Shown piece by piece: positions 15,101 through 35,209 of a DNA stretch of 64,000 nucleotides. The position numbers and the translations under genes were made by a program. This DNA comes from Fimbriosthenelais zetlandica (taxonomy: Eukaryota): positions 24,552,001 through 24,616,000 of the forward strand of contig OZ365111.1 in assembly GCA_977030845.1 (NCBI GenBank), read 5' to 3'. A model generated the notes under the pieces. It was not told the origin of the DNA. It ran no database searches and worked only from the letters and a program-made list of their open reading frames with translations. Within the stretch, counting starts at the first letter, position 1. Each line of letters begins with the position of its first letter.

Positions 15101-16951
15101 AGAAATCATTTTAAAAGATACAAATTCACCTCTATTTTGTTAACTATAATATAGGCATATTCCATTCCAGTCAGATATCCATGGGTTGGCCCAGATATTT
15201 TAATTCATTTGTATTAATATTGTAAAGTTGTATTTTTTATCTTTCCACCCCTCAAAGAGGAGGTGCATTTAGGTGCAAATCTTTTGTTGAGGATTCAAAT
15301 TGGAATTCAAATTCAAATTTGTCATTACTCCTTCACTGAAATGGTTGTAAATATTTTAAAATTATTTTATAATTAATAAATGAATCGATTGATCTACACA
15401 GGGGAATTAAATGTATTTTTGATGTATTTTTCAGCCTGAGATTACCCCTGTTAATTTCCCGGCCTACTTCAGCCAGAAGAAGCCTTTTGTTCTCTTATTT
15501 GATGAGAATATCTTGGAGGGGCAGGGTGCTCACGGGGAGGTGGCCGCCGTGGCTGCTACCATGCAGTTCCCTCAATTCATCTTCGGCTGGCTAGAACTGT
15601 AAGTCTCAGCTGTACCCAAGGAATGAATGAATGAATGAATAGAGGAATGAATTAATGGATTAATGAGTGGAGGAATAATGGCTGGAAGAATGGATAAAGA
15701 ATGAATGGACGGGGGAATGAATGGAGGAATAAACGCATGAATGAATGAATGAATGAATGAATGAATGAATGAATAAATGAATGGATGAATGATTGAACGA
15801 AGGAAGGAATGAATGTAGGAATATAGGAATCAATGAAAGAACATGAGTACCATAATCTATTTATTATAATTTACATGCCCTTTTTTCTATGTCCAGGACC
15901 CGTGATGATGGTGTTGGAGGTAAGATCTTGCTGGAGTATAATTCTGAGGCTGAACCCCCGTCCCTCTTCATCGTCGACCACTCAACGGTACGGAGCTCAA
16001 TATTTTAATTTAGTTCATTATTAGTATTCTTCATCTAAATTCTTTTTTAAAGTGCTAATTGGAATTATTCATAACTATAGGATATCATTTAGTATTTTCA
16101 ATTGTAAATTGTATGATTAATTTTTTTCCAGGCTGCAATATACAGTTATCAAGGCGGAGAAGTGAAGAGGGACCAAGTCGATGAATGGCTTCGTAGTGTT
16201 CATAGAGGCGAAATCAAACCTTGGAGTAAGATTTTATTCCATTTATTATTGATATCTTTTAAGTTTTACGATTAGAAATAATCTATTTGTCTTTGGAACC
16301 CTATCTGAATTTTACTTGCTAATCTCAACATGAATTTGTATTTTAGAGATGCTTCAAAATGAGGAATGGAAACCGCTAAATCCTGGTTATGATTTCTTGA
16401 GAATGATTGATGAAGAAAATGCAGAGGAGGAAGAACGCTCTGCTTACAAAGGTGTGTACACATGGCTATATATAACTAATCAATGTACCATACATTAATT
16501 AGTTGCATTTTACATTGAGTATAATGCTTCGGAAGAATGTCTTTTGTGGCCTTGAAAAGCAGTTCTTTTTCAAGATTTAGAGCCTTAAAAACTGTATTTC
16601 TGTTCAAGACAGTTCTTATTAAATAGGCCTGTTATCCTACCAGAATATATATTATCCCAGGTAAACAGAAGAACTCCATTTAAACTAATTTTGACACTTT
16701 TCATTATAACGTAATTGTGACTGATAATCATATATAATGACAAAAACTGGTCATCACTTATATATATATTTCTCACCCAATCCGGCACTACAGCGCCACC
16801 AATGTGGAGCCGGCGAACTGCGCCACCAGACGAGGAGAAGGAGAAGCAGATCCGAGCTGAGCTCCACTCCATGTATCTACAGTCTAACGAGATGTCTTCA
16901 ACTACAACAAAAACACCGCCTAACATGGAAAACCCACATTCCGAACTGTGA
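3131..16951 (+). CDS. TXNDC16: Thioredoxin domain-containing protein 16 (ERp90-like), 20 coding exons
   Basis: Exons 3131-3311, 3617-3699, 3812-3894, 10896-10970, 11227-11348, 11611-11701, 11808-11958, 12295-12455, 12661-12739, 12943-13069, 13435-13614, 13965-14193, 14463-14602, 14781-14865, 14950-15091, 15435-15598, 15897-15987, 16132-16225, 16347-16451, 16794-16951, all GT-AG and frame-consistent. N-terminal signal peptide; [10 protein letters not shown] and SMAF...[10 protein letters not shown]...YPTIRIY...YKGMLG motifs resemble TXNDC16; no CxxC active site; ends HSEL-stop. Confidence 0.88.
3948..4215 (+). repeat. 5' LTR (268 bp)
   Basis: Reads identical to 10315-10582 by eye; TG...CA ends with 8-bp terminal inverted repeat. 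Confidence 0.95.
4217..4231 (+). other. Primer binding site, tRNA-Leu-like
   Basis: TGGTACCTAGGAGTG lies 1 nt after the 5' LTR. It is complementary, with one extra T, to the remembered 3' end of tRNA-Leu(UAA) (CACTCCTGGTACCA). Confidence 0.7.
4235..6414 (+). mobile_element. Helentron-type non-autonomous element (HINE-like) nested in the LTR element
   Basis: 5' AATCCCATTTCCCC subterminal repeat folding back on GGGGAAAATGGG, then a T/TTA-rich tract. The inverted copy GGGGAAATGGGATT (6371-6384) is followed by a small hairpin and CTAG|TT. Both ends and about 800 bp of body are shared with the copy at 52670-54060. Confidence 0.7.
7376..9061 (+). pseudogene. Gag-like ORF (about 560 codons) interrupted by one in-frame TAA
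   Basis: ORFs 7376-7903 and 8192-9061 are in the same frame, and 7904-8191 is open. Domains: N-terminal HhH-like segment, Arg/Ser-rich tract, KIPTYDG...W..Y..QF retrotransposon-gag core, coiled coil, and a knuckle [14 protein letters not shown] with the last Cys replaced by Trp. Confidence 0.85.
9052..9096 (+). promoter_or_regulatory. Programmed -1 ribosomal frameshift signal (G GGA AAC plus downstream GC-rich stem-loop)
   Basis: The heptamer GGGAAAC (9052-9058) is in XXXYYYZ phase directly before the gag TAG. After a 5-nt spacer, CAGGGG (9064-9069) pairs with CCCCTG (9091-9096), with an inner GGCC/GGCC stem. Confidence 0.7.
9148..10032 (+). CDS. Second ORF of the LTR element (-1 frame relative to gag), Pro-rich with 23-aa repeats; function unknown
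   Basis: 294-aa ORF whose frame is already open from the slippery site at 9052; repeats of [23 protein letters not shown] type. Confidence 0.45.
   Translation: MPHNSPQGDDKSDKAMGLGGSLVSSATSRGVTCELQNGLQGHPHSTQHAVARTSMVSNSHSHQPYDAWKLGCAPQTPVHRAGLASPPPPTDRPPDGTLRVVHGAGFSSPPPPTDRPPDGTLRLVHGAGFSSPPTPTDRPPDGTLRLVPGAGFSSPPTPTDRPPDDTWRPVHGTGLVSPPTPTDRPPDDTWRPVHGVGLISPLTPTDRPPHGTQEPALVPGAGSDTCLSPTSRPPDGSPPPSCDHSGWFPGSETSIRNVEFRETWGPLGLDFRRKLPAAVIMELAAANAEALFRL
9398..9850 (+). repeat. 69-bp minisatellite, about 6.5 copies
   Basis: CCAGTCC unit starts at 9398, 9467 and 9536 (period 69), diverging towards the 3' end. Confidence 0.9.
10301..10314 (+). other. Polypurine tract
   Basis: AAAACAGGGGGGAA abutting the 3' LTR. 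Confidence 0.85.
10315..10582 (+). repeat. 3' LTR (268 bp)
   Basis: Reads identical to the 5' LTR by eye. Confidence 0.95.
10583..10690. repeat. (CCAT)n microsatellite split by the LTR insertion (left part 3932-3947)
   Basis: CATC/CCAT units on both sides of the element. Confidence 0.85.
15624..15815. repeat. (AATG)n microsatellite in a TXNDC16 intron
   Basis: Imperfect GAAT/AATG run. Confidence 0.9.
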
Positions 16952-18807
16952 TTTACAGCCACAGTGACCATGATATTATATTATTGACACGACCAGTCAA
17001 AAGACTTACATTAGGGACCACTAAAACTTATCTTCGTATAAATCTGTAGCTACGAAGTGAACCAAACCAAATCAAATGTCTTCTTTTATTAATTATATTT
17101 ATACATATTATTTTTGATGCCATGGATAATGTCTGTATGAGTAATATTGTTAGATCTTAATGGACTTTAATGATCTAAAGATTATTCTAAGGGACAAGAT
17201 CTCGTTCTCATATTTTCTGGAGATTAGACCGAATATAGTTTTTTCCACATGAACTGATAGTTATATATCTGGTACATTATTGCCTAGATAATATAATTAT
17301 ATTGTATCTTATATCGTGTTAATGTGTATTCATTGTGTCGTTTACAGGCATGTGTCATGACTTTTGTTAAAATTATTTTTCACAGATACCGGTATTAAGT
17401 CTACATGTGAAAACTGTGATGTTCTCAAGTACTTACATTCCCATGGGTCGGGCATAGGCCTATATATTGTTGTCATATATTTAATCATTTATTGTTGTTC
17501 TACAGCAAGTCCAATACGAAAATCCCCAAAGACATTCCTTTTCATGTGTTTGAATTATGAAGTGTGGCACAGATTTTATGTTAAATATACATTATGAAGT
17601 AATTTGAAGAATTACATAGAATAAGGTAGACACTTTTTGTCTCTCAAAGAAGATGTTATTTTCAAGTCTTTTAACCAGTCTCTTTGACGATTATGATGGA
17701 AATAAAATAGTATATTCTGTATTAATTCCGATGTTCTCTGAATAAACGTCATTGAATGTCGTACTAATTATTCATATCTTTCATTTCAATACTTATGAGT
17801 GTTGACAGTAATTGTCCCACACAAATCTCAAAGGGTTACCAACTTTTATAATTGAATAACATGGTACTTGTGAATCACATAACCAACACCATTAATCAGT
17901 TAGGGACAGATCTATGTCGTAGATGCAAAGTTCTAATTTATACAGAAGCGGGTTGTTTGAATTTAAAATGGGTCATTTTTCTTTGCTGACAATATTGTGA
18001 CAATCAAAATACATGGATCCACGAAGATCTCTTGGATGATAAGAATATGCATAGGCAATGCAGGCAACTTTATGATCAAGGGAATATGACAATCACACAG
18101 GACTGTCCTACAATGAATGGTGTAGCATTGAAACATGTTAAAGCCATGTCTTAGTTACATACGATTTTTCCTCTTTCAAACAAATTCAATACAAAAATGT
18201 ACTTGTTCATGCATTCAGATTATCCCCTAATTAATCTTCTAGGAATTAATGGGGTTTGCTATATATAGTCAAGCGGACAATGGGGGTAATTGTACAGGAT
18301 TTGCGAAAATGTTATTATTAGTACTCCCCACATCCTTTTCAGAACACCCAGGCCTGGGGTATGTTTCAAAAGAAACATGCGCTTCATGGTACAATGGGTT
18401 TAACACGGGGTAATGCTGCACTTTTTATTTATGAAACGGGACCTTGAAACAACCAGAACGCCATCGAGGCCAAAGCAGCAGTTGAAGCAGCACTGGTCAC
18501 AAACTATAGAAGTAGGCATAGCTTCTGCTGCAGCTTTAATACGGCCTGCCTAGCACTGCAAACAGCTGCAGCCTACTCCATCCCATGGATCATTATTGGT
18601 TCGCATATCATTACTACTGACCCTGAACGCGTGGATAGAAGCAGGGACGCTTGTCACATAGATGACAACAATAGCTAGGCATCCTTGTCCTCACTTATAA
18701 CATTGAACCTCCTTGTCAAAGATAGTGGAAATTCTGATAGCGGATATAGATAACACTAAAGGAAAAGGCAGGGGTTCTGAGATTACGTGAGGAAACCATT
18801 GGGCAAA

Positions 18808-21800
18808 ATGTCGGTGACTTACGAGGACATCCTTGCAGCAGCCAAAAGGATCCAACCCTATATCCACAGAACGCCGGTTTTCACCTCATCTCACATAGAC
18901 CAAGTTGTGGGGAGACAGGTGTATTTTAAATGTGAAAATTTTCAGAAAACTGGATCTTTCAAAGCTCGAGGAGCGCTCAATGCAGTGAGTTTCACTCTTC
19001 TTCTCTTTTTACTCAATTAAATCGGCTAATATTAAATATCGGTTAATATGTTTTATTTTTAACAAATATTGAGATCAGATTTAGGCTATCTTTATGACTT
19101 TGATTTCCTTGCCTCCTGAACTGAAGTTTTTAACACAATATTTACTTATAAATACTCCCGTGTATGACTAACCTATATACCGGTACATAGTCAAGGACAT
19201 TGGTTGCCCTCGCAGATTAACTGGAGGAGGGCATTGTAGGCCTATTATAGGCGATTATCCTGTCACATATTTAGCACAACCGATTTTAATTGCACAAACA
19301 CAACCCCCATCTATTTGCTACATGTATAAGTCCCGTATAATTGTAGTAAAATATGTAATACCTTTTCAATTTTGTGTGTGTAATACAATGGTTTTATAGC
19401 TAAAGCAACGAAATGTTTTGCTCCAGAATACACAATATATACAAGCATCGATATCTATATTCAAACAAACAGTTTAGACATTGCACGGAATATGTTTCGG
19501 TTAAAGGGGTTTTTATTTGGATTAGTTGTCAAAACAAAGGTTCCAAATAGTAAAGAAGATGGGGTTTGATCTATAGAGGCATCCAGTATCAAAACAAAGG
19601 TTCCAAATAGGTCTACTTTCAAAATATATCAAAATATATGTAATATTCTGGGGGTCAATTGCTCCAATATGTTATAATTGTTCGTCTTTCTTTTAGGTGC
19701 TTAAAATAAAGGAAGCAGACCCCAACCATCCTGGAGTAGTGAGTGTTTCCTTTTTTATCTAAAAAAAAATAGAGTATACATCACTCATTAACTTATGTAG
19801 CTTATTGCTATATAACTTAATTAATTGATATTTTCTATGAAAAGTTTGAGAATTTGATAATAAATGTCTACCATCTCTGCAGTTAATGAGTTAAGCCCAA
19901 CGGAAGAGGTCAGAAATTGGGCCATATTACTATCTATTGGGGCATAAATCCATGGTTTATCAATGCTTGATGTATACAGAGAATTCCTAAAATAGACAAT
20001 GATATAGACATCAATGAAGTAACTATCTCTATCAGTAGATCTAAATCTATAGATAGGCTGGGCAAACAATTAAGTCTACTAAGGGGGCGGATCCAGCGTT
20101 TTGGAAAGGAGTTAGGAGGTGTACTATTTGGCTATATTTAGTATTTGAGAACAAATTTCCTAAAGGGTTTGGGAGTAGGGGGAGGTTCTGATCCCCTAAG
20201 ATCCGCCTCTGTTCTAGTGAAATTCAGTTTGATAATATTTATAAATCGTGGCAGATTGTATACATTTAAATCTAATTTATTATAGGTCGGGAACATTGTA
20301 TACATTTAAAGAGCCCCAGCCACCAATAATTAAATTTTATTTTAATTTATTTCAGGCCACACACAGTAGTGGCAACCATGCCCAAGCCCTGTCCTATGCT
20401 GCAGGTACAGCAGGTTTAGCGGCATCAGTGATTGTACCTAACAACACACCCAGTGTGAAATGTGATGCTATCAGGGGGTATGGGGGGACGCTTTACTTCT
20501 GTGAACCTAATCCCGTCTCCAGGTAACAAAATTTATTATGTTTTACATGAAAATTCACTAGTAACGCAACTTAATTGATCAGGCAGCATAATTATGGTGT
20601 TGTAATAGTCATGGCAAATTCACGCAACGTTAGAAAATATTACATTTATATCTCTGAGAGCAAAGCCACACATTTTGGTAATTGGAAAGACCAGGGACTG
20701 GTTTCAGAAAAGCTAGTTTCAGAGAAGCATTGCACTATCCAATGGTATAGAAAAGGTAATCCTAGAAATGAAACGCGTCTTTCTTCTGTGGGTTCCACGA
20801 TAATCTTTTCGCATAGATTAATAATTTACCTATGTATATATCTTTACCTATGTACCTATGCATAGATTCCTATTTATTTATAATTTCCAACGGCATTATT
20901 AGAATGGGCAGGTGCAAACCAAATTAGACACGCTGACCTCGAGCGTTGTTCCATGCATATACGCGATGCATTATGCATTAAAGCTATAATTCCATCAGCC
21001 CTTGCATCTCATGCAAGCATGACGAAGCTATATTATTAGAAACATGGGCAACTAATCTGTCAGGTAGATTTTTAAACTGAATCTTTGGCGGATCCAGAAG
21101 GCCTGGGGTGGGGTCAGGACCAAAGATGTTTTCACATCTTGTGAAAAAATACTATTTTTTTGTGATTAATTTACAGGGCAGAGACGTGTGAAGAAGTCCG
21201 CCAGCGTTTGGGACAGACGTACATATCCTCTCACGATCATCTTGATGTCATTGCTGGACAGGTAAAATAATGAATAATTATTATAAATTATAAAAGGTCA
21301 TTATGAATAAATGAATTCCTACTTTAAATTGTAAAGTTATTAGGACTAAATTAAGGCCCCCAGAATCAAACCAGAGTGAGTCACTCACCTGAATTAATAA
21401 ATTTTTGTTTCAAATTTTAAAATATTTTCAGGGTACGATAGCCATTGAGATGCTGGAGGATGTTCCTGATTTAGATGCTTTGTTTGTCTGTGCATCAGGG
21501 GGAGGTCTTATCACTGGTAATGGACTGGCTATGAAACATTTAAGACCTGAATCCAAAGGTAAAAATACGTTATACTAATCTATAGTCTATCATGCCTAAT
21601 CACCTATAGTACTAAAAGTATGATTATACTAAAATCAATTAAAATCCATAATACAATTATGAATATAAAATAAATTAAATGTATTATTCTGTAAATATCC
21701 ATGTATAATTTGACTATTGTACATTTTTGCATTGAAATTTTCTCTATTTTACAGTGTACGTTGTGGAGCCGAAGGGTAAAAATCTTGGGCCTTGTATGGA

Positions 21801-25358: not shown

Positions 25359-25659
25359 TTATATAGAGGCACTAGTCTAATCTGAAACTCCACATGATCG
25401 GCTCCTACCCCCAAGCGGGACACAGGGATGGATATTTTATCTAGATCTACCTATTTTCCCAGGTCACTACTGCAGTACAGTACAGTGACCGTATCGCCTT
25501 TCCAAAACTCCCTATACATCTACTAAAAGTCTGAACAGAGATTGTCCCAAATTCTATGGTCTGCCTCACTATGTCTTGGTCTTATCAGTTGATAGTTTTT
25601 TTAATATTTGACCTTGTCATACAGTTTAGGTTTATTGTGGATGTGAATGGTAAACCACC

Positions 25660-28600
25660 ATGTCGAGGCGTAAATCAATGAAAAGTGAGAGGACAGGAGC
25701 GACTCCTGGTAGGACCGGGCAGCCCACAGCAGTATTCAACCCTGATTCTGACCTCCCTGAACCTCCCTCCGGGTATACATACATGACAACCTACACCTGG
25801 ACCATGCAGACCGACTCAAAGGAATCCTCCATGGAAATAGAGACGCCCAGGAAAGAACGGGAAGCTCCCCAAGGTAGGCCCTGATTTCAATTTTCAAGTA
25901 AAAAAAAAGTTTAAAAATACCTTTGGCTTTGGACCTAAAGTTTGATATTTTATAACACGTTAGAGAATAAAAGTATTATCAATATGGTTAACCTGACGAG
26001 ATTGAAATTGAAAATAGCCTTCATTAGATTTCAATTTGAAACTGGATATTTCTTAAAATTCGGATGCTTATCTATTAGTATTCGGATGCTGATGAAACTA
26101 GAAAAATTGTAGGAAAAATCCTTAGTTTTAAATTTGTTGATTCTAAATGAATAGTTCAATATCTCATGTTAGAGTAATACAGATTTCACCAGTGTATGTC
26201 TATAAATAAAGATTTAAAGGTTTCAAAAATATTTAAGATTTGTGTTTGTATAACATGTTTTACAGATATGAGTTTTGAGCCTATCCTGCCTGTCGAACTG
26301 GATTCTGATGAGGATCTCGGTATAGGTAGATATGAGTCACACCATCAGGCAGTTTACAAGAGAAAGTCTTGCCCAAAATGTGAGTATATATAGGCCTAGC
26401 CTGTGGGTGTTAATCTTGGAAATAAGTATATATTTCCAATAAAATAATATTCAATAAAAGATATGTATAGTTTATTGTAAAAATATAATTATACAACAAA
26501 AGTGATGCTTACAAATAACATATTTTGCAGCACATCGTCTAAGGGGGAAATTTCTAGCCCAGAGGGGATCGTCCCAGGAAGAAAAGACAGTCTGTGTGCC
26601 GGAGAAGAACACTAAGAATGAAGAGGGGGAGAAGGAAAGGGACGAGGTATTCTACTCTATGGAATGTGATAGCACCTTGTATTTCCAAGGCGGTAAGTGC
26701 ATCCTCTAATAAAGTATGTTATAGCCAAATTTTTATTGTCTATAGACCTACTTTTTGACATTTACCGGTAGTGTGTGGGTCTAATTTGCTCAAACTGTAA
26801 GTAGTATATGGGATATGTACATAGACTCAGGCTTAGTCCCATACTTCGCTGTATGTAAATTATAAATTAAACTTGAATGAATTAACTTTATGATATGAAA
26901 GAAATGATATACTAAAGAGACATGAATATGAGGCACTTTTTAATACAGATACAATTTTCTTCTTTTTTCTCAGGGAACCAAGTGTTAAACAAAGGCCTCA
27001 GAGTTAAAAATTCTACTCTGCTGGATTCTGCTCAAGCGCGTCCTGCCGCGGAAGTATTAAGAAATCTGGACCTCTCAAATATAAAAGGTGAGCAACAGTG
27101 AGAATCAGTGACTTTTCCAGCTACCTCAGGACGAGAAGGAAACAAGCTGTCGGCGCACCATGAACTGCTCTTGAACTACGGCAATGGTTTCTTTTATATA
27201 TACCTCTCACCATAGGTATGAGATAGGTGTGCCGTGCCAGGATACTGTATGGCATATACAACCTTTGATATCCCAGTTAGCAGAAATGTTAGATGGAGAA
27301 CAATTTAAATGGAACTGAGAATATGTAATATTAAAATTAGGATCTTAGAAAACAATTATATCTAAATTTTATTAGTTATCATATTTTGTGGATGAACTTA
27401 GATATGACTAATATTTTCCTTGGTTTCAGATAAAAGGATCGCGTGGAATTCTACATTGTTGGATTCGTCCAAAGCCAATAATGCTGGGGACGCTTTGGGA
27501 AAAATCGGCCTTTCCACGGTTCGAGGTAACTTCATACCCTTGAAATCATTTTTTCGTTACAATCATGAATTGTATTTTAATTAACCAAGGCCACTTGGAA
27601 GCTACGGGGCAAAATTGGCAAGATATATTTTACCTAAATCTTTTTGCGTAATATAATGAACCTTTATTTTTTATAACGTTCGTCTAGAATTGGAAACAAA
27701 AGAAGTAAATGAGATGGGAAGTCTCCAAGTGCATGAATCCATTTCAACTATACACAAAGTAGAGACTACTCCTGCCTCCAAATCGACATCAAGGACGCCC
27801 GGGTCTGCATCACTATTTTATTTGTTAATTTTGGGGTTGTTCTTCATTGTGTTCTCGAAATTTACTCTGAGTTCAACAATTGATCAAAGCTCTTCGAGCA
27901 CAGAGCACAGATGGTGTAAGTAAAGTATTCATGGTGCAGATGGTCTCGTTAAATGATTCATTTAAACGAACAAAGGTAACAGGGAATGAAATAAAATATT
28001 CTGTATTGATTTGTTATACCTAATCCAGGAGGCCCCCAAAGAAGAAGAAGGAGGTACTGACGCCAGCAAAGATACTTGATCTTGGTGAGCCTAATAATTT
28101 GTATTTTATTTAATGTCCACCAAAAATGGAGTTAAATTGGTCCCAAGAGGCTACAATTCTGGTAATGATAATATTGAAATGTTTCATTAAAATCTTCACA
28201 CCTATGAATGCAGATGGTGAAAAAAACAAAGTAAAGTTGCGACCGCGAAAGGTCAGAAGCCTAATTTGCACTATATTTTAATTTAGTTGAGTTATCCGTT
28301 CCAGTTTATTGCATACTCCCCATGAATATTTTCTGATCAGTTTCAAAGTCAAGGAGAATTATTAAAATTTTAAAGTTTTGAGAAAATTGAGGTTCTGCCA
28401 AATCCTTCATGAATGGGGATAGTGGACTAGATTCTTGGTCAACTACTCCGCCCCTTCCAGTTAAATGCCAACGAAACTTTGGGTTTTATTTCTATTTTTG
28501 TTTATCAAATTCAATACAAAATTAAAGGAAAGGAATATGAGAACTTATGTGCTGAGATCACCCAACGAACATCTGAAAAACGAAATTTTCCAGGGAGCAT

Positions 28601-29958
28601 GCATGATTTTACCAATGAACATCTAGTTGGGTTGATTAAAATGTCCTTTCACACGTTTATCTTCTTGACTAACATCAATGTTACCGCTAGATTTAAACCA
28701 ATTAAGGAGAGAGTTATTTCAAGCAGGTATAAGAATGGCATGAATTGATTTTACATTTCTCAGGCAGAAGGGTCATTATTTACCGATTATAATACAGAAT
28801 TCTAAGAAAAAAACAAACAATTATATTAATATTCGTCGTAAAACATTTTCTATATATATTTAGTTATTTATTTATAAATATTATTTACAGAATTATTTAT
28901 AAATGTATTATTGCTAATTAGAGTTCTATGACAAAGACAAGTACGCCGATAGGATGCGATATAAAGGCTCAGGAAGAAGGATTTGAAGTAAGTGTACCAC
29001 TGAAATTAAATTTACTACGGAAATTCTTATTTTCAAAAAAGTGACAATAAAAAAAAGATCATCGCTTGGGAAATCTGTCCGTCGCAGCTCAACTGAGCCA
29101 TGTTTTCTAGGAATTTTTCTCTCGTTAAATACTGTACTTATCATATATACAGTGTACTTTCTCTTGATTCCAGGGTGACCTGTCTTCAGTTAAATTTAGA
29201 AATGTCACTGGTGTTGAATTGGACATTGAAGAATCTCGCTTCGTGAACAGTGGAGAGATCCTCACTATGTCTGAATGGCATCTAAACGACAATGACGAGG
29301 TAAATGGAGCAAAATTATTACATTTTGTTTTAAGTTTAAACAATTATTTTAGTACCATTGCTACCGTTCGTAAAAATGATGATATACATGTATATAAAAG
29401 AAATAACATAATAAATTCAACGCTAAAAAATCCAAGAAAAAAGATTTGTAAAAAGGAATAGAAATTTAAAAGTAGCTAGGATACATTTGCTGATTTATTT
29501 ATGAATCTTTTGCTTCAGTCAGTTGAGGAATGTGACCTCTGCTATGACGAAGATGTTATACCATCGCCACGGAGACTGGGCGGAATGGTAGACTATGAAC
29601 TGGAGATATCCGGCATACCAGAAGGTGGGTAGGTTTTTTTATTTTTTTTTAATTTAGGATATTTATACAGCGAACAGAGGGGTTGTAGGCTCACGGGACA
29701 CAATAAATGTGGCTAGTCCATAATATTCTGCTGTTTTTCTAGGTGCAGACTAGGGAGGAGCTTTGAGTGGGTTAGTAGAAAGGTTGAGGTTGTTAGTATT
29801 ATTTTGAGTAGTGATGGATGGTGGGTTAATGGTAATGGTTTGTGCGTGCAAGGTAAAGACAAATGTAATTCTTTTTTTTTCTTCTTTTTTTTTTTACAGA
29901 TTATTTATCATTGGATCCGTTAGAAGACGATGTGTTCATGTCAGAGACAGAAAAATAA
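25660..29958 (+). CDS. MEIKIN: MEIKIN-like meiosis-specific kinetochore protein, 12 coding exons, about 421 aa
   Basis: Exons 25660-25873, 26266-26379, 26531-26692, 26974-27087, 27430-27525, 27688-27802, 28029-28084, 28214-28251, 28922-28987, 29174-29299, 29519-29624, 29900-29958 give one open frame. Motifs in order (WNSTLLDSSKA; TPGRPPKKKK; TSTP; GF..DLSSV; VNSGEI) parallel remembered human MEIKIN segments (WKNSTLLDTSKA; TPEKTKKKK; LTSTP; GFVIDLSSV; VNSNEI). The exons at 27688 (donor) and 28214 (acceptor) are the least certain. Confidence 0.65.
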
Positions 29959-31918
29959 TATATTACTTAAAGATTATTTATATCATACAACCAAACTTAA
30001 TTATAATTTAAAAATATTGTAGCTTATAAGTTAGTTGCTGATAGACTTTAATTTTAAGACTAGCTGTTGGGAGGCTCTACCATTGAGTACTGTTTATAAG
30101 AACAAAAAAATGTTTCTGAAAGTTGATTACTTTTTGCCCTTTTTTGTCGTACTTCACTATTTTGAGACATGAAACATGAAAGTAACAAAAAGTTACAATA
30201 ACAAATAACAAAAAGTTAATGTTCTCTGAAAAAGTAAATGTCTGATATTTATTTTTGTACCAAGTTTTCTTATACATGTAAAAAGTACAGAGTAGGACAA
30301 AATAAAATACGGAACAAAAAATAGTTTTACTGGTTTATTTCAACTTAGCTACATCAGTGAGGTGGAAGGAGGGATTTACCCTAATGAGGCAAATACTAGA
30401 GGCAGTCCTTAGGAAAAAGACATTTTCAACACAATGTAGTGCATGTTATTACATATGTACATAGCATATGTAAAAAGTTGGAATACGATGTAGCATTCAT
30501 ATGGTATGTAGTTCCTTTACACATTCAGACTAGGCTTAGAGTATGGAATGAGAGGAAGAAGTGACATATTGTAGACAATTTGGGAAAACTTTTCCCATGT
30601 TTTTGTTCAAAATGGTGAATGTAAAATTTCCCGAATGTGATATAAAGCATCCGATTTTAGTCTACAATTTGTATAACAAATACCTAACAGTGTAAGTGTA
30701 ACAAGTCCTATTTTATCCGGTTAGATAAAACAGCTATCAACATCTGCTCAATTTACTAAGTTTTTGTATGCAAACTGTTAAAGAAAACAATTTTCAGTGA
30801 CCTTGTCATTAGTTATGACCTACTAAAAAATATAGCTTTCCTGAGAAAGCTTAAATAAATATTGATATTTGTTATAGGAGCACTGTAGTATAGACTTTAA
30901 AAAAAATAAAAATTGTAAGATAGTGTCAGGTAAGCGATACCTCAAGAAATCGACACTACAAACTAATTTTTGATTTTCTGGATATACATATAGTGACACA
31001 TATAGGCCTATCCTTACACATATATATTAATGGGCCAAATCTGATACAGACAATTAAGTGCAAATAATGCACTACACTTATACGTAAATCTAGACTAAGT
31101 TCAGCAGTGTTAAGAAAACAAAGTTAAATTATGCAAAAACACTTATTACCCCACCTTAAGATATATTTCCTATGCACACACCGGTAAAATCCGTTAGCTA
31201 TGATTTGGATACATCTTTGGTAAAATCCCGATTACATGTCTATGTCAATGGCTTCAAAATGAACCAAACATATTAAGTTAGTTACTTAGTCAGTAATAGC
31301 CTATATCTTTTCTTCGAAGCTTTCGTATATTTTCCAATACAATTCATAACAGCAATATTTCAATACTTTAGTGATGCTAGTAATCGAGTTTATAATCACT
31401 TACCGTGTATACCCTTAAATTAATAAAAGCTCAGATATTTCTGTAACACAACTTCAACAATAGTATCACATCCTTGATACTGAAACCTTCCAAGGTTTAC
31501 AAAAGTCAAATATAAATCCAACTGAACATACTTGAATAGCTGGACGAGATCACATAAGTAGTTTAAATTAGCATCTCCAGGGTTCCTAGCTTTAGAGGAG
31601 AGAAAACTCTTTTCCAGGACCAAAATTCAAATACTTGTTTCTTTTTTGGCCGACACAAACCTGGCAAGAAATTTAGAATTTGTCGAAAATTCACATTACC
31701 GTCATTTTTCCCAGGATTATTACTGGTTTTCCAGTATAGAATTAACAAATTTTCATGTTATTCCAGAAGATTAGGAACCCTGAGATTAAGTGCAAATTGC
31801 GCAGCTAGTATTTGTGCATGGGAATGATGCAGTAGAGTAGGTGAGGCAGGGGTAGCGTAGTCAACTAGGACGAAGCCACAACACAAACTTGTCTAAGCAC
31901 AATTTCCGTTTGCCACAG

Positions 31919-34900
31919 TCAGCTGTTGAGCTTTCCTGCCATAAAATCTCTGAAAAAAATTACATTAATCATTAATTACTTTTAAATAAACGTTTCTATG
32001 AGTGTTATTACAATGCAAGAAACACGTTAATTTGAACTAAATTAAAAGAAAATGATTTTTATGAATTATTTTAAACAAAATAGGTAAAAATTAAATTGAA
32101 ACTGACTTGATAATTCTAGGGAGGTGAGGGGCTTTCCATATGTGGTCATGTCCATAGTTGTGCTGAGGTTCAAAGTTAATGAAGAAGGTCGATTTGCCAG
32201 CTTTTCCTTTAGATGCAGCCTCGTATAGCTGCGAAAAAGACACAAATTTATAATTAACAATATTAGTTTGTTTCTGATCGATAATATACTGTTTATTACT
32301 CCAAGAAAATTTGATATTGATCTGAGATGCACAAGTCAGTGCCACATATGTATGTGGCCAAACAGAGAACCAAAAAATTCGAGATTTGTAAATAAATATA
32401 TATATATACTCAAAGACTACAACATATTTCAAAGCCTACCATTTTGCCCTGAACGAAAGGCACCACGGCATCGTCCTCAGCATGTAGTATCAAGATGGGC
32501 ACTGTGATGTCCTGGATACTAATAAAAAAACAAAAATTTAAATAGGTCAATGGTTTGAAGCAATCTTCTCCTCTCTATTCTTCTCAGAGAGCAGACCAAA
32601 CATAAATCTAGGGATCTTTTAATCCATAATGTACTTACTGTTTATCATTGGCAAAGTAGATGTCATTGTACTTCAAAGATTCCACGATAACCCAAGTGAA
32701 ATATGGCATATAGCGGAATGGCTGGAAAAAGTTAAGATAAGAAATTAACAAACCATGGAAATGGAAACATGGTAAATTAATATCAGCTAATTCCATCATC
32801 AATTTAATGTTCCATAAACTCTATTGTCCATCACCGGTACATAAAACTATTAAAATTGAAATAATTTTTTTATATTTTATAAATTTTAAGCTATAGAAGA
32901 GAATCTTACCGTTGCGAGTGGGTGCTTACTGGCCGCATCAATGATGTTAGTGAAAGGTGCATCTAAGATGACACCACTGGGAGGAGTCCCTGAAAAGAAA
33001 ATTAATTTAAAAATTTACAAAATATAGGGCAAGACTCGAGATGTTACCATAAACTATTTCAGTAATACAATAACGTACCTCTCTTGCATGATCTAGCTCC
33101 TGTCTGTGTAGCAACGCTGCAAAATTAAAATTAATTCAAAAATTAGTTACTTTTACAAAACAACATAAATGTTTCAGAAATCTATTCTAGCCGAAATTAA
33201 TTATTTATGTAGTATAAAAATTCAAATGAGCTCCTAAAAATTGCCTTCTGAGAACAAATTTTTTCTAAATCAATATACTACACCTAACTTACCCAGAACC
33301 TAGTGAGTGTCCCCAGATGTAGACCGGTACTTTTCCTGAATGTTTCTTTACCCAGTCATACACAGCTAAACCGTCTTCAACTAGTCCTTCCTCACTGGGC
33401 GTCCCAGTTGAATCTCCAAAACCTGAACGATGAATTAACACACAGAAAATGTTCAAACTTTAGAATATAAGCTGCACAATACATAACTTATCTGAGTATT
33501 TCATCTGTATCATCTTACGGAAGGAATGGATAAACTTATATTTCTTATTTGATAAACAGTGAAGAAATTAATTAATTAATTTAATTAATTAATATCATAC
33601 CTCGGTAGTCTACAGCAATGACGTGATATCCAGCGTTAGCCAACACTTTGTAGATGGAAATTCGATGTGATACAGCTCTGAATAAGAATTAAATTAATTA
33701 GGATTAGGTTTATAAAGAAAAGACTTTATTTAAGAGAGAAAAAAGAGTGGCGAATGATTGAATATTTTGTGGCCAAAGGTCGAAAAAAAAATTGCCTCTC
33801 ACCATAGACAGTGGCTGGCCTTTGATATCTAAGCTAGCAGCACTGTGTGGAGAAGGACAATGGTTAATTTTTGGACAATGTTCTATAAGTGGTGTTACCT
33901 GGTGCCAGCATTGCCGTGGTAGTATATGATGATTGGTTCACCGTGCTGGAGTAAGGCTCTGTATTGTTTCCCTTCTGTCAGTTCACGATCCTGGAGGGAT
34001 TCAGGAAGAATATGCCTGAAAAATACAAACTTCAGCATTAAAAAGACTGGCATTTCAATGTGTATAGAAATTGTCATTTCAGTCAGTCCCAGGTTTGTAG
34101 CATTAGAGGAACCAAAATTCCAAAACTTCTCCAGGAGAGAATTGCCGTTTTCCAGGACCAAAATTTCTCGGCCCAAAAGGGAACCCTGCGTGCTTTCCAG
34201 AGATTCTAGAAATATCATAATGTTCTCTTACCATGCTCCAAGTTTGACGTCATCTGTTGAGGGAATAGCGAAGTTAAATGTTCCATTCAGGCCAAGACGT
34301 TCAGGTTTGGTCAAATCCACAAAGAATGGTACTTTGACTGAAAAAAAAAGAGAGAAAAGTTCAGAACATTATGTGACCTAATCATAGACTCTCCCATTTT
34401 CTTAAGAGTAATTATACGCACCAAATTATATTATTAATAAATTTGTAAGACTTACATCTATGAAGGAATGCTATTTCTGACATGATCCAAGGGTTTAACT
34501 TCACTATAGCTGGGACGAGAAAATACATGACGACAAGAGACCATGCTCCGACCTTCAGAGCTAGCAGCACCGTCCGACTGTGTGGCCTGTAATATACAAT
34601 ATTTACATCAATGATGAGTGTCAATAGTTAGCATAATTTTAGTCATTTTAAAGCTATCATGGACATAAGTGTTAATCTGAAAAGTCTTCTATATTCAATA
34701 TAATTCTTGGTACAAAGTTATTATGTTTATTGAAGTTAAGTTTATTGAAGTTCAGATACTCACCTTACACTTCCCTCTTTCATTGGTGTGGGTTTAGTAG
34801 CACTTGTGTTGCTGGGTTTAATTTTGCTCGCTGCAGCTGCCACTGTGACACACCCACCCACAAGTGTAGATGTCAAACTGGCCGCCTCAGTCTCAGAGAC

Positions 34901-35209
34901 AACACTCGCTGATGCTTCTGCCAGATAATCAGCAGGAGTTTTAATGAAAATATTATGTTCTGGAGAGCCATTAAATGTACCAGGCCCGTTATTGCCGTCC
35001 ATGTCAGCCTTACCTCGTCGGGGAGTTCGGGGACTAACCTCGGGTTCTAACTTGTTGGGGGTTGGGTCCACAGTCGCCGCGGACCCGTTCCTCCTGTCAT
35101 CGAGGTTTTGGGTCGTTTCTGAAGAGAGTTGTTGGATTTGAGATGCATCACCGCTCTGAGTCGGAGCATCCTGCTCGTCCTCACAAACCTTACCGTTCCT
35201 TAGCCTCAT
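31919..35209 (-). CDS. ABHD12: Lysophosphatidylserine lipase ABHD12, 12 coding exons
   Basis: Exons 34764-35209, 34456-34586, 34232-34337, 33899-34015, 33601-33677, 33293-33422, 33079-33116, 32910-32989, 32639-32721, 32440-32518, 32107-32228, 31919-31949. TM helix, YYHGNAGTR, DYRGFGDSTG.PSE.G, WGHSLGS nucleophile, LHAEDD, YGHDHIWK catalytic His. Confidence 0.93.

Follow-up and report, generated by a model that had tools for sequence, protein, structure and literature searches.

Background

MEIKIN, a meiosis-specific kinetochore factor of meiosis I, is described in the literature as a vertebrate protein, and its counterparts in yeast and flies have almost no sequence in common with it. No mention of an invertebrate MEIKIN was found in the literature searched. 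Here, a predicted gene of Fimbriosthenelais zetlandica is reported, which shows a MEIKIN-like arrangement of short motifs. It is located on the plus strand at positions 25660-29958 of the window, that is, the whole analyzed stretch of 64,000 nucleotides (nt) (contig OZ365111.1 of the assembly GCA_977030845.1, positions 24,552,001 to 24,616,000). We lean toward the reading that the gene encodes a disordered nuclear adaptor of about 421 amino acids (aa), which would dock polo-like kinase through short linear motifs and probably belongs to the MEIKIN family as a diverged member.

Human MEIKIN consists of 373 aa, and the coordinates of its functional sites were reported by Maier et al. (bioRxiv 10.1101/2020.11.29.402537). 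The separase site, S149-P-ELFR154 with ELFR at 151-154, lies at about 40% of the protein length and precedes the Plk1-binding region on the N-terminal side. The Plk1-consensus sites are S175, T176, T180, S181, and S196, and the STP motifs are at T251, T264, and T276. The kinetochore and CENP-C binding domain (328-373) includes 333-ICCII and 367-DIII, two motifs rich in isoleucine. A self-primed dock was invoked for S175-S181 in the same study (bioRxiv 10.1101/2020.11.29.402537). Mouse MEIKIN is longer, with 434 aa. The consensus of Plk1 sites is [D/E/N]-x-[pS/pT], where pS and pT are phosphoserine and phosphothreonine. For Spo13-Polo, a phosphosite with a subsequent hydrophobic residue is favored. 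The ligand of the polo box is S-[pS/pT]-P.

Gene Structure and Predicted Protein

Positions 25400-30200 of the window were read, the three forward frames were translated, and twelve segments bounded by GT/AG were joined (Table 1). Every intron of the resulting 12-exon gene is of the GT-AG type. The joined exons constitute a 1,266-nt open reading frame (ORF), corresponding to 421 codons and TAA, with zero internal stops. The start ATG sits in ACCACCATG, in a Kozak context and immediately 3' of an in-frame stop. The first AATAAA 3' of exon 12 is observed at 30301.

The 421-aa protein is almost entirely disordered, and neither a coiled coil nor a folded domain is evident from its composition. It includes, in this order, WNSTLLDSSKA (aa 207-217), PPKKKKE with LTPAK (274-286), TSTP (309-312), GFEGDLSSV (323-331), and FVNSGEI (348-354). 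Among them, GFEGDLSSV straddles the junction between exons 9 and 10. A preliminary description of this DNA had proposed that 12 small exons encode a mostly disordered protein of about 421 aa with these five motifs in this order. The GT-AG joining and the intact 421-codon ORF bear out this structure, and all five motifs are present and collinear in the joined translation.

The exon chain exceeds a hand-picked open frame, as indicated by three independent lines: composition, splice sites, and duplication. The GC content is 45.7% in the exons versus 30.7% in the introns; when segments are considered individually, it is at least 0.39 in all exons except the last, and at most 0.36 in all introns. 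Scoring of the 226 GT sites on the gene strand with a generic donor matrix placed 10 of the 11 used donors within the top 13; the opposite strand contains about half as many GT sites above the same donor score. The weak splice sites are the donor of exon 6 (GTCTGC) and the acceptor of exon 9 (44th percentile), the exon bearing the only STP. It is very probable that this predicted 12-exon protein-coding gene is real.

Duplication of Exons 4 and 5

Exons 4 and 5 are tandem duplicates; the score of their protein alignment is 61, versus a maximum of 45 in 2,000 shuffles. The proportion of synonymous differences in the aligned codons is 0.71, with synonymous sites near saturation, and the duplication is therefore old. 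Between the two exons, the seven codons of NSTLLDS show 4 synonymous and 0 non-synonymous differences, an all-synonymous outcome that 4 random changes would give with P of about 0.004. Thus, the frame is translated and the motif is under selection in both copies.

Only exon 4 bears an ExxR motif (EVLR), which has two hydrophobic residues as in human ELFR; exon 5 has DALG at the corresponding place. Because both exons are in phase 1-1 and their lengths are multiples of three (114 and 96 nt), either exon could be skipped without a break of the frame. The use of just one of them results in a protein of 383 or 389 aa, compared with 373 aa in human MEIKIN. Even if the likeness to MEIKIN is convergent, this locus cleanly exemplifies a short linear motif that has stayed fixed in both copies of an ancient exon duplication.

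Comparison with the Landmarks of Human MEIKIN

The membership in the MEIKIN family, which we regard as somewhat probable, is based on motif geometry and not on alignment. The comparison relied on the human coordinates given by Maier et al. (bioRxiv 10.1101/2020.11.29.402537) instead of a sequence alignment.

The candidate protein contains ExxR motifs in EEGEKER at 140-146, acidic at P6, and in EVLR at 190-193, with Ala at P6; ExxR motifs are common in general. NSTLLDSS includes S209-T210-x3-S214-S215, in which position -2 is N relative to T210 and D relative to S215, and this S/T cluster occupies 209-215, versus 175-181 in human MEIKIN. In sequence, the candidate has a Plk1-consensus cluster upstream of the STP, a feature of MEIKIN, and the core of this cluster is duplicated and under purifying selection. 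The S-[pS/pT]-P feature in the C-terminal half of MEIKIN is likewise present at the sequence level, as one S-T-P with T311. LTP is seen at T283, where human MEIKIN has T251. The C-terminal landmarks are CDLCY at 372-376 and DDVFM at 412-416 of 421, and the two-Cys patch deviates by at most 8 residues from the place that human ICCII would predict for it.

The spacing from the ExxR to the S/T cluster is 19 residues in the candidate and 24 in human MEIKIN. From the cluster to the last STP threonine it is 102 and 101 residues, from the STP threonine to the Cys patch 61 and 57, and from the acidic-hydrophobic motif to the C-terminus 8 and 6, respectively. If exon 4 is skipped, the landmarks are placed at 143/171/273/375, compared with 151/175/276/367 in the human protein. 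Composition-preserving shuffles reproduced the spacing of the cluster plus the STP in 0.1-0.3% of cases, whereas for the C-terminal motif the rate was 2-7%. None of the 40,000 shuffles yielded all landmarks jointly, including those within blocks of 25-60 residues that keep the regional composition. For the absolute landmark positions, the product of the marginal rates is 8.5e-7.

The preliminary description had proposed, from five collinear motif matches to human MEIKIN, that the gene is probably a MEIKIN orthologue. The order and near-spacing of the landmarks agree with the human coordinates, whereas the exons searched gave no profile or sequence match. Orthology with vertebrate MEIKIN, and hence a pre-vertebrate date of the family, is plausible but undemonstrated.

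Proposed Mode of Action

The gene structure, the constraint on NSTLLDS, and the presence, order, and spacing of the motifs are shown by the sequence. In the proposed mode of action, the gene would share descent with vertebrate MEIKIN and be expressed in meiosis, and its product would bind Plk1 and CENP-C and be cleaved. The two constrained N-S-T-L cores would represent both Plk1-consensus phosphosites, that is, [D/E/N]-x-[S/T] with a hydrophobic residue next to it on the C-terminal side, and S-pT ligands of the polo box. Since they fit both the phosphosite consensus and the polo-box core, they would act as self-primed docks. S-T311-P would be a polo-box site primed by cyclin-dependent kinase (CDK). 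The acidic-hydrophobic C-terminal 54 aa encoded by exons 11-12 (CDLCY ... DDVFM) would anchor the complex at the kinetochore via CENP-C. An ExxR upstream of the docking region, either EKER143 or EVLR190, could allow separase cleavage at anaphase I, and PPKKKKE may serve as a patch similar to a nuclear localization signal (NLS).

Two motifs may be related to phosphatases. KRIAW, directly 5' of the second NSTLLDS, presumably fits the PP1-docking RVxF pattern [KR][KR][VI]x[FW]. ISGIPE and the following acidic residues presumably fit the PP2A-B56 LxxIxE pattern. Either match may be due to chance.

A more extended scenario can be drawn, although we consider it rather unlikely. MEIKIN would be bilaterian-wide, with the order and near-positions of its landmarks kept for more than 500 million years. 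NSTLLDS would be the ancestral self-primed polo dock. In this annelid, alternative use of the old tandem pair of docking exons would lead to isoforms with and without the candidate separase site EVLR, which only exon 4 bears.

Homology Searches and Alternative Explanations

Several results weigh against the membership in the MEIKIN family. The homology searches were run exon by exon, not with the spliced 421-aa protein. Nine exons, including the C-terminal ones, matched no Pfam family at E-values up to 10. Exon 10 was compared with 1.84 billion representative proteins and retrieved two matches only, both of which were artefacts from tandem-repeat proteins. Nothing relevant was found from PDB with exons 1, 5, 9, 10, and 11. 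ESM Atlas returned noise for exons 5, 10, and 11, such as pentapeptide-repeat proteins at low recognition. With the exon 5 ORF and exon 1 as queries, a word-index protein search yielded zero candidates, scans of JGI metagenomes with exon 1 and the exon 10 ORF revealed no relatives, and Rfam had no match over the whole window. A text search of the literature for the motif strings of the preliminary description found nothing. These searches show that the collections hold neither the proteins of this genome nor close orthologues of the candidate gene. The exon queries were 22-71 aa in length, and their search power is low. We estimated that, with a 42-aa query and a library of 2.4e11 residues, two exactly shared motifs (9 + 7 residues) would reach about 35 bits, which is far from significant. 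Because short queries would miss even exactly shared motifs, the piecewise negatives carry little weight.

The comparison of landmarks raises further objections. The test was post hoc, designed after both proteins were seen, and shuffling is a naive null for real disordered proteins. Between human and mouse MEIKIN, the interval from the separase site to the C-terminal domain differs by about 54 residues (bioRxiv 10.1101/2020.11.29.402537); near-exact spacing is therefore more than homology requires, and is in part a matter of luck. A single STP is present in the candidate, versus three in human MEIKIN. No isoleucine-rich run like ICCII or DIII, and no run of three aliphatic residues, is observed anywhere in the candidate protein. 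The P6 residue of EVLR is Ala, neither Ser nor acidic. Two other genes of the window encode a PALP enzyme and a PTK7-like protein (Table 1), and to our knowledge, these are not neighbors of vertebrate MEIKIN.

Some of these objections would be accounted for by a real lineage-restricted disordered nuclear protein, which has docking motifs for polo kinase, CDK, and phosphatases but is unrelated to MEIKIN by descent. The likeness would then be convergent or coincidental, and the function may be other cell-cycle or chromatin regulation. We find this possible but doubtful. Proteins of this kind, disordered and rich in S/T, readily carry STP, ExxR, and [DEN]x[ST], and the lack of sequence or profile matches in the exon-wise searches, the single STP, the lack of an Ile-rich motif, and the post hoc design of the test all fit such a protein. 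The joint match to five published human landmarks in order and spacing, seen in 0/40,000 shuffles, does not. Moreover, the NSTLLDSS motif was singled out independently in the preliminary description as a match to human MEIKIN, and it bears the published S-T-x3-[ST]-S pattern, an agreement that would be unlikely if the proposed likeness were empty. RVxF-like and LxxIxE-like motifs also occur in other kinetochore scaffolds, and their presence here as KRIAW and ISGIPE would suit an origin from a different known family of cell-division regulators that act through short motifs, such as a shugoshin-, sororin-, or CENP-U-type adaptor, of which the candidate would be a diverged member. Pieces as short as these exons give searches little power to recognize such a family. 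We nevertheless consider this origin improbable, since Pfam gave no match even for the C-terminal exons, which would hold the signature domains of such families, and the composition indicates no coiled coil or folded domain.

It is very improbable that the exon chain is an artefact of the choice of frame-preserving GT/AG sites, or that it represents a pseudogene or a non-coding transcript. The lack of relatives in the searched protein and metagenome collections and the weakness of two splice sites, the donor of exon 6 and the acceptor of exon 9, are compatible with an artefact. The contrast in GC content between exons and introns, the high ranks of 10 of the 11 donors (top 13 of 226), the divergence of the duplicated NSTLLDS core by synonymous changes alone, and the Kozak start with the clean stop all argue for a translated gene. 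The reading as a polo-docking adaptor, probably of the MEIKIN family, is the one that we retain.

Features of the Window and Related Loci

Table 1. Exons of the candidate gene and other features of the window (positions in the window).
Feature	Position	Strand	Protein (aa)	Description
Exon 1	25660..25873	+	1-72	Start codon; disordered N-terminus; ETPR motif; donor at 98th percentile
Exon 2	26266..26379	+	72-110	Phase 1-1
Exon 3	26531..26692	+	110-164	EEGEKER at 26620-26640, ExxR with acidic P4 and P6, first candidate separase site
Exon 4	26974..27087	+	164-202	114 nt, phase 1-1; duplicate unit A; NSTLLDS at 27009-27029; EVLR at 27051-27062
Exon 5	27430..27525	+	202-234	96 nt, phase 1-1; duplicate unit B; KRIAW (RVxF-like) at 27432-27446; NSTLLDS(S) at 27447-27467, [ST]2-x3-[ST]2 cluster
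Exon 6	27688..27802	+	234-272	Weak donor GTCTGC
Exon 7	28029..28084	+	272-291	PPKKKKE (NLS-like patch) at 28033-28053; LTPAK at 28057-28071
Exon 8	28214..28251	+	291-303	Basic
Exon 9	28922..28987	+	304-325	Phase 0-0; sole S-T-P (28940-28948, T311), candidate CDK-primed polo-box site; weak acceptor
Exon 10	29174..29299	+	326-367	Least polar part; FVNSGEI at 29240-29260
Exon 11	29519..29624	+	368-403	CDLCY two-Cys patch at 29531-29545; ISGIPE at 29606-29623
Exon 12	29900..29958	+	403-421	TAA; DDVFM at 29926-29940, acidic-plus-three-hydrophobic motif, 8 residues from the end
Exon 6 read-through	27803..27920	+		Probably non-coding
PALP-enzyme exon	20248..20526	+		Upstream of the candidate
PTK7-like gene	46.7-60 kb (46740..48034, 59806..60072)	-		Pseudokinase gene with Ig exons
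Retroelement remnant	7376..10032 (7.4-10 kb)			gag-like, GC-rich (56%)
Downstream ORFs	33895..35209	-		Presumably alpha/beta-hydrolase-like

The read-through of the weak exon 6 donor is open for 39 further codons, to about 27916. It adds a hydrophobic stretch resembling a membrane span, and its stop overlaps a good GTAAGT donor. The frame spliced from this donor past exon 6 suits exon 8, not exon 7. The segment is AT-rich like the introns, and it is therefore probably non-coding.

The PALP enzyme is a pyridoxal-phosphate enzyme of the serine racemase/dehydratase type. The closest named relatives of the kinase exon in the PTK7-like (inactive tyrosine kinase 7) gene are from annelids (Capitella teleta and Paralvinella palmiformis, 67%, versus 57% for a bivalve), and further contigs reach 89-93% identity; the window is probably of annelid origin. 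A close relative (run ERR14368249) is represented by a 17-kb Logan contig that is collinear with the window from 60.7 to 42.4 kb, with exon nucleotide identity of 80-86%, and that includes several conserved blocks beyond the 3' end of the PTK7-like gene (window 42.4-44.3 kb). In the walk from the PTK7-like gene, this contig reaches as far as the counterpart of 42.4 kb and misses the candidate by 12 kb, and the contigs from another relative stop 2 kb past the kinase exon. In the Capitella and Paralvinella flanks of the PTK7-like gene, tblastn detected nothing similar to the candidate. The next gene past the PTK7-like 3' end in Capitella teleta (15706-17040 of that locus) encodes an intronless 444-aa protein that belongs to no Pfam family, and it shows no tblastn similarity to the candidate. 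Synteny with vertebrate MEIKIN was considered as a test and rejected, as the neighbors differ and the distance is too great to be informative.

In the retroelement remnant, an ORF with an HHH motif and a Retrotrans_gag ORF precede a further ORF that consists of repeats about 23 aa long. The ORFs downstream of the candidate, which have no Pfam match, we take to be alpha/beta-hydrolase-like from their ABHD12/13-like HGNAG motif.

Relationship to Known Polo-Kinase Regulators

If confirmed, the candidate extends the MEIKIN family by a new member from protostomes. Such a member would trace the family back to the ancestor of bilaterians, and the intermediate sequences gained with it could be used to test if Moa1, Spo13, Matrimony, and MEIKIN truly constitute a single family. 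The residues of importance would likewise be indicated, namely the N-S-T-L-L-D-S core held by selection, the sole STP, and the acidic-hydrophobic tail at the C-terminus.

Moa1, Spo13, and Matrimony are fungal and fly regulators of polo kinase in meiosis I, designated as "MOKIRs". Like the candidate, they are small and poorly conserved, and they bind polo kinase via a site of the S-[ST]-P type. Moa1 also binds CENP-C, and Spo13 is removed by the anaphase-promoting complex/cyclosome (APC/C), not by separase. They have essentially no sequence in common with MEIKIN or the candidate, and the mode of action alone is comparable. CENP-U/PBIP1 and BUB1, which are polo-box receptors at kinetochores, are reported to use S-pT docks that are CDK-primed and Plk1-self-primed, and the N-S-T-L cores of the candidate fit both the Plk1 consensus and the polo-box core. 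Those proteins have folded domains and known partners, whereas the candidate resembles them in short motifs alone.

Vertebrate MEIKIN is similar to the candidate in length (421 aa, or 383/389 aa with one of the duplicated exons) and is mostly disordered. Both show the same order of an ExxR, a Plk1-consensus cluster, an S-T-P, a hydrophobic patch containing Cys, and an acidic-plus-three-hydrophobic motif in the tail. The candidate differs in that CDLCY and DDVFM replace the isoleucine-rich ICCII and DIII, in that it has one STP and not three, and in that the docking motif is doubled as a tandem pair of exons.

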